A stretch of 64,000 bases of DNA. Source: Schmidtea nova. Lineage: Eukaryota. Where the stretch lies: assembly GCA_044892505.1 (NCBI GenBank), contig CM097882.1:204042001-204106000 (forward strand). The letters are read 5' to 3'. Below, one piece after another: positions 5,151 to 25,600 of this stretch. Every line of letters starts with the position of its first letter. Positions within the stretch are counted from its first letter, which is position 1. The notes under the pieces are model-generated. The model was not told the DNA's origin. It saw only the letters and a program-made list of their open reading frames with translations, and searched no databases. A program made the translations under genes and the position numbers.

Positions 5151-6658
5151 CTATTTGAATATGTAAGAATCACGAATTTTATGTTATGCATGCTAGCAAA
5201 TCATGCCATGTTACCCTGCCGTATGTATTCTGATTTGATTTTTATTTTTTTCGAAGTTTAATAATATGTTATCTTATGGTAAATTATGTAATGATTATAA
5301 TAATTTTTTTCTATTCAAGTTTTAATTTTAACTTTGATCATATTTTCTCACAACCTAACATACTTATATTGATATTCATTTATTAATTTATATGTATATT
5401 TATATTTTTTTAATTAAAACCATTTTCATACGTCTGATGATGGTCCACTTAGTCGTTGTACCGTCGTATGTCGCTTTAGTGAATCATTAGTTCGCTGGAG
5501 TCCTTTCAGTGTTCTGATACATTTTTCATCGAAAGGAGCGCATACATCCAAAAACGCTTCATATCATACCTGGCTATATGAGGAGTAGTGGATTGGCCAA
5601 GAGCAAGGTCTGTTCAAAGTAATTAACGCCTAGAATCCTATTACATTTTTTTTGATATGCGATATGGTATTCAACGACGCAAATGAATATTTTATTTAAA
5701 GTATTGTATTTATATTTATTTACATCAAATTGTATAATTCTTACAACTACATAAAATTGCGAACATAATAAAATGAATCAGAAATATGCATTCGTCTAGT
5801 CAATCGCCTTCGCTCAATAAACGTAATCTTTACTTCACTATGAAATAGAGATTCCAATGCCGATTATCGAGTACCTGAGTACTCGATTTTTTAAACTTAT
5901 TTTCGAGTACTCGACTACTCGAAAAAATCAAACCCGATATCAAGTATCAATTTTTAAAAAAATACACTTGTTTTTTTTCAAAATGTAAATCCGAAAACGG
6001 AGTAGGCGAAGCAATGAAAATGTTTATATGATGATTTAAATTATTTTTTTCATTCATTTAGTGATTTTCAGTTAAAAAGTTGTCATTTGTTTAATTTTTT
6101 TTATTGGTGCACGTGCAGTTAAGTGTTTATAATTACATAAAAAAATTAGTTAATGATAAAACAAAATACCGATTTTTACATCCTGTTTGTGTTATATTGA
6201 ATAATTAGTAAGTAAATAACAATGCATATATTTGAACATATTAATTAAATAATATATTTTTTAACCATTTTTAAAAAAGTTGATATATTACTATAAATTA
6301 TATAAACGAAAGTTATGTTCAAATTGTTTTAAGCATATATTTATATTGTTATAAGTAAAAATTAGTATATTTTTGTTTTATTATAGTTTTAACCACAAGA
6401 AAAAATGACATCGAATAAATCTTTAGTGTGGGATCATTTTATTAAAAAAGGAAAATCTGAGGCAATATGCAAAACATGTCAAACCATCATCCAACGTTCA
6501 TCATCTAATACAACTGGTATGATTAACCATTTGAAAATACACAAGATTTCGTTGCTAAAAACGAAAAATGATGACTTGATCGATGCAGCTTCAAAAAAAT
6601 CTAAAATGGATAGTAGTGGTAAGTAGGTAGATGTGTGGAGCCAAGAACAAAGACATTA

Positions 6659-6845
6659 TGACTCATTGCGTGGGCAGAAAAAAAAAGAACAAAGACACCC
6701 CCCTCCCCCTCCCCCCGGGGAAGGGGGGTAGAAAAAAATATGACTCATCGATGACTCATCATTTTTTTATGACTCATCGATGACTCATTTCAAATTTGAA
6801 TTTTATGACGTCATCGATGACTCATTTCAAATTTTAAATTTGAAT
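6659..6845. promoter_or_regulatory. Subterminal cluster of AP-1 (TGACTCA x6) and CRE (TGACGTCA x1) motifs with a C/G tract; mirrored at ~22640-22830
   Basis: Exact consensus motifs repeated within ~170 bp; function inferred only. Confidence 0.45.
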
Positions 6846-6859
6846 TTCCAAAGGTTAAA

Positions 6860-7474
6860 TAAGGTCAAACCTTCAAACAAGGGTATCATTCGAAAGGTCT
6901 TGGAGAGGTCTATACAATGGTCATACCTTCGAAGGTTTATGGAGGGTCTTTAACCTTCAAAGGGTGCAAAACCTTCAACCTTTTTTAAACCTTATAATAT
7001 ATATATATCATTCGAAAGGTATTTAAGAGGTAGGTATGTTGGTCATACCTTCGAAGGTTTATGGTGGGTGCTTAACCTTCAAAGGGTCCAAAACCTTCAA
7101 CTTTTTTTAATCCTTATAATATATATATCATTCGAAAGGTATTTGAGAGGTAGGTATGCTGGTCATACCCTCGAAGGTCTATGGTGGGTGCTCAACCTTC
7201 AAAGGGTGCAAAACCTTCAACCTTTTTTAAACCTTATAATATATATATATCATTCGAAAGGTATTTAAGAGGTAGGTATGTTGTTCATACATTTGAAGGT
7301 CTATGGTGGGTGCTCAACCTTCAAAGGGTGCAAAACCTTCAACCTTTTTTAAACCTTATAATATATATATCATTCGAAAGGTATTTGAGAGGTAGGTATG
7401 CTGGTCATACCCTCGAAGGTCTATGGTGGGTGCTCAACCTTCAAAGGGTGCAAAACCTTCAACCTTTTCAAACC

Positions 7475-7559
<85 letters not shown>

Positions 7560-21531: not shown

Positions 21532-21564
<33 letters not shown>

Positions 21565-22145
21565 GGTTTAAAAAAGGTTGAAGGTTTTGCACCCTTTGAA
21601 GGTTGAGCACCCAACATAGACCTTCAAATGTATGAACAACATACCTACCTCTTAAATACCTTTCGAATGATATATATATTATTAGGTTTAAAAAAGGTTG
21701 AAGGTTTTGCACCCTTTGAAGGTTGAGCACCCACCATAAACCTTCAAATGTATGAACTACATACCTACCTCTCAAATACCTTTCGAATAATATATATTAT
21801 TAGGTTTAAAAAAGGTTGAAGGTTTTGGACCCTTTGAAGGTTAAGCACCCACCATAGACCTTCGAGGGTATGACCAGCATACCTACCTCTCAAATACCTT
21901 TCGAATGATATATATATTATAAGGTTTAAAAAAGGTTGAAGGTTTTGCACCCTTTGAAGGTTGAGCACCCACCATAGACCTTCAAATGTATGAACAACAT
22001 ACCTACCTCTTAAATACCTTTCGAATGATATATATATTATAAGGTTTAAAAAAGGTTGAAGGTTTTGCACCCTTTGAAGGTTGAGCACCCACCATAAACC
22101 TTCAAATGTATGAACAACATACCTACCTCTCAAATACCTTTCGAA

Positions 22146-22226
<81 letters not shown>

Positions 22227-22630
22227 GGTTTGAAAAAGGTTGAAGGTTTTGCACCCTTTGAAGGTTGAGCACCCACCATAGACCTTCGAGGGTATGACCA
22301 GCATACCTACCTCTCAAATACCTTTCGAATGATATATATATTATAAGGATTAAAAAAAGTTGAAGGTTTTGGACCCTTTGAAGGTTAAGCACCCACCATA
22401 GACCTTCGAGGGTATGACCAGCATACCTACCTCTCAAATACCTTTCGAATGATATATATATATTATAAGGTTTAAAAAAGGTTGAAGGTTTTGCACCCTT
22501 TGAAGGTTGAAGGTTTTGCACCCTTTGAAGGTTAAAGACCCTCCATAAACCTTCGAAGGTATGACCATTGTATAGACCTCTCCAAGACCTTTCGAATGAT
22601 ACCCTTGTTTGAAGGTTTGACCTTATTTAA
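20790..22630 (-). repeat. Mirror copy of the ~120-bp minisatellite
   Basis: Reverse-complement units; variant order differs from the left arm. Confidence 0.95.
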
Positions 22631-25600
22631 CCTTTGGAAATTCAAATTTAAAATTTAAATTTGAAATGAGTCATCGATGACGTCATAAAATTCAAATTTG
22701 AAATGAGTCATCGATGAGTCATAAAAATGATGAGTCATCGATGAGTCATAATTTTTTCTACCCCCCTCCCCTCGGGGGAGGGGAGGGGGGTGTCTTTGTT
22801 CTTTTTTTCCGCCCACGCAATGAGTCATAATGTCTTTGTTCCCGGCTCCACACATCTACCTACTGTGGTATATTAAAATTTGTTAGTCGGGAAACATTAG
22901 AAGAAATATTGGCAAAATGTTCTGCAAAAAGCGGTTTTAGTATAAAAGGCATAGTATCATCTGAAGCCATATAAGGGTTTATACAGAGTCGCGGTTACAC
23001 CATGCCGAAAAGCGAAACAACAGTAATAAAATACGTAATGAAGTTTTACGAAGACAAGAAAGCCGAAATGAAAGTTGCGTTATCGCTCCAAATTAAATCT
23101 GGAAACAGGTTTAGTATAACTGTAGACGAATGGAGTGACATTAACATGAGAAGGTATATAAATGTTACACTCCACTCATCAGTTAGAGCATATGTTCTTG
23201 GACTTGTTCCTATTATAGGGTCTTGTGATTCTGACGCCACTATTTCGTTAGTTACACAAAAACTCAAAGAATTCGGTATCAATTTAGATTCTGATATTGT
23301 AGCTTCAACTAATGACGGAGCTGCAGTAATGGTGAAATATGGCAGGAATATTGCAGCTGCATGTCAGTTATGCATAAACCATGGAATTCATCTTGGTGTC
23401 ATTGATGTATTTTATAAGAAAAATATGAATATAATAGAGGTGGAGACAAATGATGAAGATGAAGACGCAGAATATGAAGATGATGATGATGGTATAGATT
23501 ATAATGACATAGCTGACAATAACAAATTTGATGTAGATGGAAATTTAAATTTTGAAGTAGAAAATCTAAATGAATTGCCGCAAATACGTGCAGACATTGG
23601 AATAGTTCTTGGTGAGACAAGAAAAATTATAAAGTTTTTCAAAAGATCATGTGTTCGAAGCTGTATTCTTCAAAAACATGTTTTAGAACAGGAAGGTACA
23701 AAATTACGACTACTTCTTGATTGCAGAACTCGATGGAATTCTATTATTCCTATGGTAAATCGTTTCTTAAAATTAATTAATTGCATTAACTTCGCTTTAG
23801 AAGAGCTAGGAAAAGAAAAGTTTCGAGAGGAAAACATTATTATTTTGAAGGGGATATCTGAAGTTTTACAGCCTGTAGAGCTAGCTGTTAATGAGTTGAG
23901 CAAAGAAGACAGCAATTTACTTAAAGCAGAAGGAGTTTGTATATTTCTTTTGAACAAGCTACAAGATGCAAATAAAGATATTGCCACTGAATTAAAAATT
24001 GCTTTGAAAAGGCGATTTGATGAAAGAAGGCAAAAGGATTTAATATCATTAATGTTATTTTTACAAACTGGTACCTATCCACAATCTAATGAACATTTTT
24101 CATATTCATCAAAAAATATAATAAAATCATCGGCTAAAGAATATTTTAAACGATTATTTAATTGTGGCCATGAAGGCGAAAATAGTCAGGAAGAAGATGA
24201 TGATTCAGATTCGCAATCGGATATGACTATGGAACATTCTGCGTATGATGAACTGCAAAAACAATTATGAGTGTTATGAAGGTTCCCAAAGTTAGTTACT
24301 CAAAATTATTATTATTGGAGCGAGAGCTAAAACTATTTAATTGTGATCAATGTAAACGAGGCGAGCATATGGAAAAATTATACCAAGCATTGCTTACAAT
24401 CCCACCAACTTCAACTGCCAGTGAGCGGGTGTTTTCAGTAGCATCAAATTTTATTACAAAACTACGTTCTCAAATGAAAACGAATACTTTAAATGGTCTT
24501 GTATTCCTTAAATACTATTTTTATCTAATAAATAAAACCATTAAATTATATCCGAAATTTTGAATTACATTTTTCATATTTAGTTATTTTTTATATTTCT
24601 TTTCATTAAATACAATATATTTCAGAACTAACCAAATAAAACCATTTAATTAAATACAAATTTTTGAGTTTTGTTTTTTCATTCATTTTTACCCGAAAAC
24701 CCGAGTTACTCGGGTTGTGTAAGTATAAATTACTCGAATACTCGAGTAATCTAAAATCCGAGTAATCTGGATTCTCTACTATGAAAGAATTCGCAAAGTC
24801 GATCGAAAAATGAAAAGTATAAAAACGTGTAAATGACCACTCAAAGAGCAGTAAAAATGTTATATTGAATAATGCTTACAGATTATACTCTATAATAGTT
24901 CGTTGAATTTTACTCTAAATCGTGAACATCATTGATAAAAATTTCTAAGAATTGCATATAGAATTTTGAATATTAAAGATTGCAAAAGAGCCGGCTTGAA
25001 ATTTTATATATGCCTTATTTTTAGAAACCCATATATGGAAATTAATATATGTAAAAATTTATAAATTATTTTTGAAGATAATTTAATTTTTTAGATTGTA
25101 TTATTTAGATTGCGAAATTTGCGAATAAAAATTTTATTATTGTATAATTTTTATAGAATTTTCAGATTTGGTTATAAAAATAAAATTTACTTATTGATAC
25201 TATATTATGTCGAAATTATAATATAAAAATTATAAATCAAAAATTATATTGGAATATATAAAAATTACAAATCAAAAATTTTATTACTATATTGGAATGC
25301 AAAAACTATAAATTATAAATTTTATTATAATATAAATTTATAAAATTCTAAATTTGAAATTTGGTAGGAAAATTATCAAATACTATTGTTATTATTTTAA
25401 TTCTATAATTATTTTATATATAAATATATATATTATTTTATAAATACCCCCTCACGATATCACAAAGATAGTTTCCAAACAATACATCCATACCATTCAA
25501 AAACACCATCATACATAATACCATATAAAATTTAGTTAACTGCCAACACACATACCACATCATTTCAGTCATTAACATTCACTAGCATCACACATACAGA

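Follow-up and report, generated by a model that had tools for sequence, protein, structure and literature searches.

What kind of mobile element could consist almost wholly of one sequence and its own inverted copy? The question is raised by a 64,000-nucleotide stretch of the Schmidtea nova genome (assembly GCA_044892505.1, contig CM097882.1, forward-strand positions 204,042,001 to 204,106,000), here called the window, in which positions are counted from its first letter. An element of 16,243 bp, 1,089 positions of which are N, occupies 6622-22864 of this window. An earlier interpretation, referred to below as the sequence-only reading, had taken it for a non-autonomous fold-back derivative of the Polinton/Maverick elements. 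Here we show that the element entered a hAT transposase gene as one unit, and we argue that a non-autonomous, fold-back Polinton/Maverick derivative is its best explanation; to this reading as a whole, including the mechanism proposed below, we assign a probability of roughly 0.55.

A single insertion into a hAT transposase gene

The outer 21 nt of the element are perfect inverted copies of each other, beginning with 5'-AG at the left terminus (6622) and ending with CT-3' at the right (22864). Searched with up to three mismatches allowed, the terminal 21-mer has no third occurrence in the window and is absent from the centre of the element as well. The hexamer GTGGTA flanks both ends (6616-6621 and 22865-22870), and because the bases adjoining it differ between the two sides, the target-site duplication is exactly 6 bp. 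The target was a hAT transposase gene, now split into a left and a right flank piece. A search with the right-hand open reading frame (ORF) identified an intact hAT transposase of 622 amino acids (P0165) that is 97% identical to the window copy. The left piece agrees with residues 1-72 of this protein at 71 of 72 positions, and the right piece, beginning at residue 72, is identical at 34 of 35. A domain search of the right piece returned a clear hAT dimerisation domain together with a weak, sub-threshold match to DUF659.

In the DNA that codes for the intact protein (L014), both flank sequences meet at one GTGGTA and thus form a paralogous empty site. The reading frames of the two hAT pieces, analysed separately, agree after subtraction of the element and one copy of the duplication. 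The paralogous empty site with its single GTGGTA proves the insertion, its bounds and the 6-bp duplication, so that the 16.2-kb element entered the transposase gene as a single unit. The sequence-only reading had described AG...CT ends, an exact GTGGTA duplication and a clean insertion that rejoins in frame, and it had named the empty hAT site as a check. All of this is borne out, by the perfect 21-nt inverted termini that are unique in the window, by the differing neighbour bases, by the protein alignment together with the frame arithmetic and by the paralogous copy, respectively. The intact transposase comes from the public run SRR28023133 and is 97-99% identical to the interrupted one; the existence of such a copy indicates that the hAT family is young.

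Target-site duplications are 8 bp long in hAT elements and 9 bp in FB elements, and the rule that Polintons end in AG..CT reportedly goes back to Kapitonov and Jurka in 2006. Duplications of 6 bp are typical of Polintons, of IS3EU/GingerRoot elements, which have TA..TA ends, and of some long terminal repeat (LTR) elements, which have TG..CA ends (PMC10045372, PMC6839031); in the literature consulted, 6 bp in combination with AG.. ends is given for Polintons only (PMC10045372, PMC6839031, PMC3014272). IS3EU/GingerRoot elements share the duplication length with the element and have a transposase of the integrase kind, but they end in TA..TA (rarely TG..CA), not AG..CT, and their inverted repeats measure 100-150 bp (PMC10045372, PMC6839031). 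Ginger1 and Ginger2 have TGTNR ends and 4-5-bp duplications (PMC2836005), neither of which is found here, and Galileo/P elements make 7-bp duplications (PMC3573991). Among the families compared, AG...CT ends with a 6-bp duplication fit Polinton/Maverick only. The earlier use of this pair as the Polinton signature is accordingly supported, since the other 6-bp families have different ends (PMC10045372, PMC6839031, PMC2836005).

Unequal arms and an asymmetric central joint

The left arm measures 7,928 bp and the right arm 7,782 bp, and they enclose a spacer of 533 bp, in agreement with the ~7.9-kb arms and ~530-bp spacer of the sequence-only reading. From the terminus inward, each arm consists of a terminal region of ~260 bp, arrays of a 120-bp unit, arrays of 15-bp and 29-31-bp units, an ORF encoding a RING finger and AT-rich repeats (Table 1). 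The non-coding stretch of the inner arm is ~3.2 kb long with 23% GC and contains dispersed repeat units of ~85 nt. The copy number of the tandem arrays is unequal between the arms: the 120-bp units form two sub-arrays on the left versus three on the right, broken by (TA)n runs.

Identity between the arms, counted over substitutions only and given in left-arm coordinates, varies along their length. It is 97.3% in the terminal 262 bp (6622-6883), 97.3% at 8338-8707, 98.3% at 9032-9454, 100% in a pair of 129-bp islands and 99.7% at 10179-14549. The last of these stretches, the inner arms, contains 14 substitutions and three indels; 12 of the 14 substitutions fall into 12498-14022, and ~2 kb are free of any. 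Substitutions are far denser in the outer than in the inner arms (16/589 versus 14/4,370; Fisher p 4e-8), which corresponds to a divergence of ~2.7% in the outer arms versus 0.3% in the inner palindrome. A jump in identity exactly at the N gaps was considered and rejected, as the last 150 bp outside the gap are already 99.3% identical. The inner substitutions and indels and the differing layouts of the outer arrays show that the arms are two physically distinct sequences. The patchy gradient of identity is what would be expected of gene conversion between the arms or of a younger second duplication.

At the inner edge of the right arm, a repeat unit continues into the spacer with sequence typical of its family. 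In a comparison at the joint, the continuation of the left arm showed no likeness to this repeat family. Because the unit runs on from the right arm, and not from the left arm, into the spacer, the colinear original comprises right arm and spacer, with the left arm as an inverted copy. The sole novel joint of the element is therefore 14549/14550, inside a repeat unit, and this asymmetric joint is the footprint of fold-back copying. The statement in the sequence-only reading that the element consists almost entirely of terminal inverted repeat holds insofar as ~97% of its length is inverted arm, but it hides a layered history of older outer arms, a near-identical inner palindrome and an asymmetric joint.

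Four of the five N runs in the window, which has 28.5% GC overall, lie within the element. All four are inside the arrays of 29-31-bp units. To either side of every gap the units are of the same family and share one orientation, and their variants succeed each other in mirrored order in the two arms; continuity across the gaps is thus plausible. Gap lengths are estimates. ORFs drawn through the N runs are artefacts, and no coding sequence crosses a gap, so that the notion of a maintained reading frame has no meaning there. The 129-bp islands between the gaps (9694-9822 and 19690-19818) are exactly reverse-complementary, which means either that the same reads were used twice or that the arms are truly identical here. 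A residual risk of misassembly remains with the gaps.

Table 1. Features of the element and its insertion site, in window coordinates
Feature	Position	Strand	Description
Host hAT transposase, N-terminal piece	6405..6621	+	zf-BED; residues 1-72 of intact copy P0165
Left 6-bp target-site duplication	6616..6621		GTGGTA; single copy at empty site in L014
Whole element	6622..22864		16,243 bp, 1,089 N
Left terminal region	6622..6883	+	21-nt perfect terminal inverted repeat from AG; one AACAAAGACATT 25 nt in; G/C-run palindrome; TGACTCA and TGACGTCA palindromes
Left 120-bp tandem arrays	6884..8337	+	two sub-arrays, (TA)n run after each
Left 15-bp and 29-31-bp arrays	8338..10750	+	AACAAAGACATT core in single orientation; N gaps 9455-9693 and 9823-10178; island 9694-9822 (129 bp)
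RING ORF, left copy	10843..11337	-	164 codons; IAP-type C3HC4 RING at C terminus; read toward left end
Left inner arm	11338..14549	+	AT-rich (23% GC), non-coding; dispersed ~85-nt repeat units
Spacer	14550..15082		533 bp; colinear with right arm; novel joint at left edge
Right inner arm	15083..18294	-	mirror of 11338-14549
RING ORF, right copy	18295..18789	+	identical to left copy; read toward right end
Right ~30-bp and 15-bp arrays	18885..21013	-	AACAAAGACATT core; N gaps 19450-19689 and 19819-20072; island 19690-19818
Right 120-bp tandem arrays	21014..22602	-	three sub-arrays split by (AT)n; layout unlike left arm
Right terminal region	22603..22864	-	ends ...CT
Right 6-bp target-site duplication	22865..22870		GTGGTA; single copy at empty site in L014
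Host hAT transposase, C-terminal piece	22865..24563	+	from P0165 residue 72; one in-frame stop

Gene content, oriented motifs and relatives

The sequence-only reading had noted one recognisable gene per arm, and this is confirmed: an ORF of 164 codons with a RING finger at its end is present in each arm, without any difference between the two copies. The ORF matches the Pfam family zf-C3HC4_3 (E 1.9e-9); among solved structures, the RING domains of cIAP2 and XIAP come closest to it (E 2e-8). All eight zinc ligands are present and are invariant in an alignment of 13 relatives. No ORF of the arm matches the BIR domain; the RING of the element is thus of the IAP type without an upstream BIR, whereas a relative on contig L003 follows BIR exons. 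An exhaustive search yielded ~300 relatives. The best of them, P0001 (198 residues), is 50% identical over the full length, and the similarity extends slightly beyond the start of the RING ORF across one stop, so that the gene may be shortened at its 5' end.

The coding loci of these relatives led to Polinton-like metagenome contigs, namely L002 and L008-L010. On L008-L010, the gene for a relative with 30% identity across all 153 residues (P0153; tblastn E 1.7e-14) lies immediately upstream of the genes for a Pox_A32-like ATPase and an rve-chromo integrase. On L002, where genes for an rve integrase and a Pox_A32-like ATPase are present as well, a truncated member (P0151) of the P0021 cluster adjoins a DNA_pol_B_2 polymerase. 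P0151 was dropped as a link to the RING ORF, as it comprises the N-terminal part of the family and by itself has no match to the window ORF; the firm gene link therefore rests on L008-L010. As these sequence contexts show, the RING family comprises IAP-tail-like proteins that Polinton-like elements carry repeatedly, without being exclusive to them. At 5029-10501 of L003, two tandem units, in which BIR exons precede an exon of the RING family, look like a host IAP gene pair and point to the likely cellular source of the family. At 190-3328 of L008, a MATH/TRAF gene and a dual-specificity phosphatase precede the RING gene, which suggests a cargo set mimicking host TRAF/IAP signalling.

The full-length protein P0021 is encoded on L006, a contig of 7.9 kb (1-7898) with inverted ends of ~0.9 kb at 86-100% identity. 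L006 resembles the element in carrying a RING relative and no core genes, and it has a 123-residue gene whose counterpart on L002 neighbours a gene for a TBP-domain protein. It differs in having no palindrome, several unique genes, two of which are of the MATH/TRAF type, and much shorter ends. L006 may be a small non-autonomous relative.

A second connection is provided by short motifs in the arrays. All 33 copies of the motif AACAAAGACA in the left arm are on the plus strand and all 29 copies in the right arm on the minus strand; neither the spacer nor the other 48 kb of the window contains it. The motif ACAAAGAC has the same distribution (33 on plus in the left arm, 29 on minus in the right) and is likewise restricted to the element within the window. 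One copy of the AACAAAGACATT core lies 25 nt from each terminus. A search for the 12-mer AACAAAGACATT, fixed before the fetched loci were inspected, gave one match, at the outer edge of the inverted ends of L002. L002 contains ACAAAGAC five times against an expectation of 0.69, a number reached in none of 200 shuffles; three copies are on the plus strand at one end and two on the minus strand at the other, beside tandem arrays of 303 bp. L002, with its polymerase and integrase, thus possesses ends of this kind in small, with oriented motif clusters and tandem arrays. A start with AGTAG at L002:2858 was considered as a likeness of the termini and dropped, as the comparison over 40 nt was not significant and the available part of L002 holds no mirrored copy. 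The terminal regions of the element also contain perfect TGACTCA (six per arm) and TGACGTCA palindromes, at 6740-6830 and 22660-22750. We take these to resemble AP-1/GCN4 and CRE sites of bZIP proteins, and the AACAAAG core of the arrays to resemble a site for HMG-box (SOX/TCF) proteins; the likeness may be due to chance or be regulatory.

Core genes of Polintons are absent from the element. None of its ORFs matches the polymerase, integrase, ATPase or capsid families in Pfam, 17 further ORFs in it give nothing above the Pfam threshold, and tblastn with the proteins of L002 and L008 finds no match in it except the RING ORF. There is no protein-family match in the AT-rich sequence of the inner arm, and scans with Rfam and for tRNAs detected nothing inside the element. 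Without a gene for polymerase, integrase, ATPase or capsid, the element must be non-autonomous, as had been proposed. The earlier phrase that it has no Polinton genes requires a qualification: it applies to these four genes, but the RING gene belongs to a family that Polinton-like elements carry. Moreover, a protein-primed family B polymerase and an rve integrase belong to the definition of a Polinton (PMC5499653), so the element is at most a non-autonomous derivative.

Decayed copies of two neighbouring L002 genes are present elsewhere in the window, at 57829-58777. The copy of the TBP-domain protein (58364-58777) has 40% identity (E 8e-29) and two in-frame stops; that of the 123-residue protein (57829-58140; E 4e-9), the gene also found near the RING gene on L006, has one. 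Related elements therefore once lived in this genome. The decayed genes lie between Fumble (pantothenate kinase) exons at 47602-48009 and 59443-59634 and are probably intronic. A lone 18S rRNA fragment (49610-50031; model positions 1173-1648, 250 bits) is situated in the same presumed Fumble intron, far from a ribosomal DNA unit. The minus strand at 228-4054 holds fragments of an LTR retrotransposon, with a reverse transcriptase, a zinc-binding domain of the integrase and a CCHC knuckle, which resemble the polyprotein on contig L001. An ORF with a CAP-Gly domain (4786-5115), an ORF for a GIY-YIG nuclease (46033-46515) and a piece of a mariner-type transposase (60690-60875) are ordinary neighbours in a transposon-rich region.

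Origin of the palindrome and its implications

We propose the following sequence of events for a fold-back Polinton/Maverick derivative. A strand that ended at the joint would have folded back and been copied out to the terminus, generating the left arm as an inverted copy of the right. Such fold-back copying could have taken place on a free linear, protein-primed genome, yielding a so-called snap-back defective genome, or during chromosomal replication or repair. The rve integrase of an autonomous Polinton in the same genome would have recognised both ends and inserted the element, and the AACAAAGACA repeats may be extra binding sites for this integrase or for another element protein. Later gene conversion between the arms, or a second and younger duplication step, would have left the centre more uniform than the outer arms.

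The element shares with Polintons/Mavericks the 6-bp duplication, the 5'-AG...CT-3' ends and long terminal inverted repeats. Members of the family of its RING gene adjoin ATPase and integrase genes in Polinton-like contigs, and its ACAAAGAC clusters and tandem arrays resemble those of L002. It differs from them in lacking genes for the protein-primed polymerase, rve integrase, packaging ATPase, protease and capsid. Its arms, at ~97% of its length, are far longer than any described Polinton inverted repeat, such as those of 584 bp (PMC3014272) and 744 bp (bioRxiv 10.1101/2024.01.15.575659), which amount to hundreds of base pairs. With Drosophila Foldback (FB) and with Galileo, Kepler and Newton of the P superfamily, the element has in common that its inverted ends are very long, repetitive within and unequal in repeat number; some copies of Foldback-type elements consist of the ends alone, the ends grow by recruiting inner sequence, and their repeats are thought to be extra binding sites (PMC3573991). 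However, Foldback-type elements have duplications of 7 bp (Galileo) or 9 bp (FB) instead of 6 bp, other ends, and a transposase of the P type or another type, and their arms measure ~1 kb compared with ~8 kb here.

A further likeness is to defective viral genomes. Protein-primed adenoviruses yield defective genomes that are inverted duplications. In snap-back or copy-back defective genomes, one end of the genome forms a palindrome around a short unique loop; the cis-acting ends are kept and genes are lost (PMC13506859). The one novel, asymmetric joint of the element fits such fold-back copying; by contrast, the element is chromosomal with a target duplication, and its arms are unevenly diverged. 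Possibly, and we suggest it only tentatively, what is integrated here is a defective polintovirus genome of the snap-back kind: it would be the chromosomal fossil of an error in replicating a free, linear, protein-primed genome, would have retained only its ends, binding-site arrays and IAP-like RING gene, and would have been inserted by the integrase of a helper.

Several observations weigh against a fold-back Polinton derivative. A one-step snap-back alone fails to explain the eight-fold lower divergence of the centre (Fisher p 4e-8). We have seen a single copy, and no element that bears these ends together with core genes occurs among the sequences examined: a word-indexed search with the RING ORF gave P0001 only (50% identity), and neither the terminal 21-mer nor a 28-nt piece of the 120-bp unit was matched in the metagenome contigs. 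Scored against shuffled controls, the terminal 40 nt show no significant similarity to L002. Known Polintons of 15-20 kb look different from an element with a gene-poor end of 8 kb. RING relatives also form the last exon after BIR exons in an apparent host IAP gene (L003), one follows the polyprotein of an LTR element (L001) and another is in a compact virus-like contig (L012), so that the ORF could be captured host sequence. Finally, the four gaps at mirrored positions and the two identical 129-bp islands indicate that the assembler struggled with this locus.

This last point leads to the alternative that the insertion is real and its palindromic interior misassembled, with array-rich ends of 3-4 kb and a single-copy interior that was placed twice in opposite orientation or in which two alleles or copies were mixed. 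Mirrored N gaps of estimated length in the 30-bp arrays, exactly complementary islands and inner-arm patches of 2 kb without a difference would be accounted for in this way, and long palindromes are generally hard to clone and assemble. We nevertheless consider misassembly unlikely, as the inner arms differ by 14 substitutions and three indels, and the gap-free central contig (10179-19449) holds both inner arms and the unique 533-bp spacer; moreover, the joint is definite, asymmetric and inside a repeat unit, and the gradient of identity starts outside the gaps. Two separate 8-kb elements inserted head to head would likewise result in two similar units in inverted orientation, an explanation that is hardly credible given one 6-bp duplication at the outer ends and an empty site that reflects a single event. 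Furthermore, the terminal 21-mer is absent from the centre, which is a joint within a repeat unit and not a meeting of two ends.

If the palindrome is accepted as real, its affiliation and the timing of its formation can be debated. We regard it as quite improbable that the element is a fold-back transposon of another, possibly undescribed, cut-and-paste superfamily, with a coincidental Polinton signature and a RING gene captured from the host. Its architecture and unequal repeat numbers are Foldback/Galileo-like, and copies of the ends alone are known for that group (PMC3573991); RING relatives occur in host IAP-like genes, and there is no significant terminal similarity to L002. On the other hand, Galileo/P, IS3EU/GingerRoot, Ginger1/2 and hAT all mismatch in duplication length or ends, and the affinities of both the RING family and the ACAAAGAC clusters are with elements that bear a polymerase and an integrase. 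Similarly doubtful, in our view, is a long-ended non-autonomous Polinton derivative whose interior was inverted and duplicated after insertion through a template switch in replication or repair, as a local accident of one copy rather than a trait that a family transmits. The contrast between the inner palindrome (0.3%) and the outer arms (2.7%) would be in line with such an event, and a template switch could have been guided by the dispersed repeat in which the joint is located. The event would, however, have had to replace the left interior exactly, without an unpaired remnant between the arrays and the joint, and gene conversion between the arms explains the same gradient. We therefore retain the fold-back Polinton/Maverick derivative, formed and inserted as proposed above, as the best explanation.

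In conclusion, Polintons/Mavericks are viewed both as transposons and as viruses, and little has been written about their non-autonomous derivatives; the literature that we searched contains no fold-back or palindromic one. With this element, the fold-back architecture that is known from P-type and FB transposons would also be represented in the self-synthesising class driven by an integrase. How such palindromes form can be read from the asymmetry of its central joint, and the oriented AACAAAGACA arrays provide a candidate recognition motif that can be compared across elements. Taken with the MATH/TRAF and TBP-like genes on related contigs, the RING/IAP-like gene points to host-signalling mimics as cargo. 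In a repeat-rich genome, a near-palindrome of 16 kb is also likely to give rise to hairpin RNA and to errors in assembly. If the element were indeed a snap-back polintovirus genome, its sequence would be direct evidence that animal Polintons pass through a phase of replication outside the chromosome, and that defective genomes, parasites of the parasite, occur among them.

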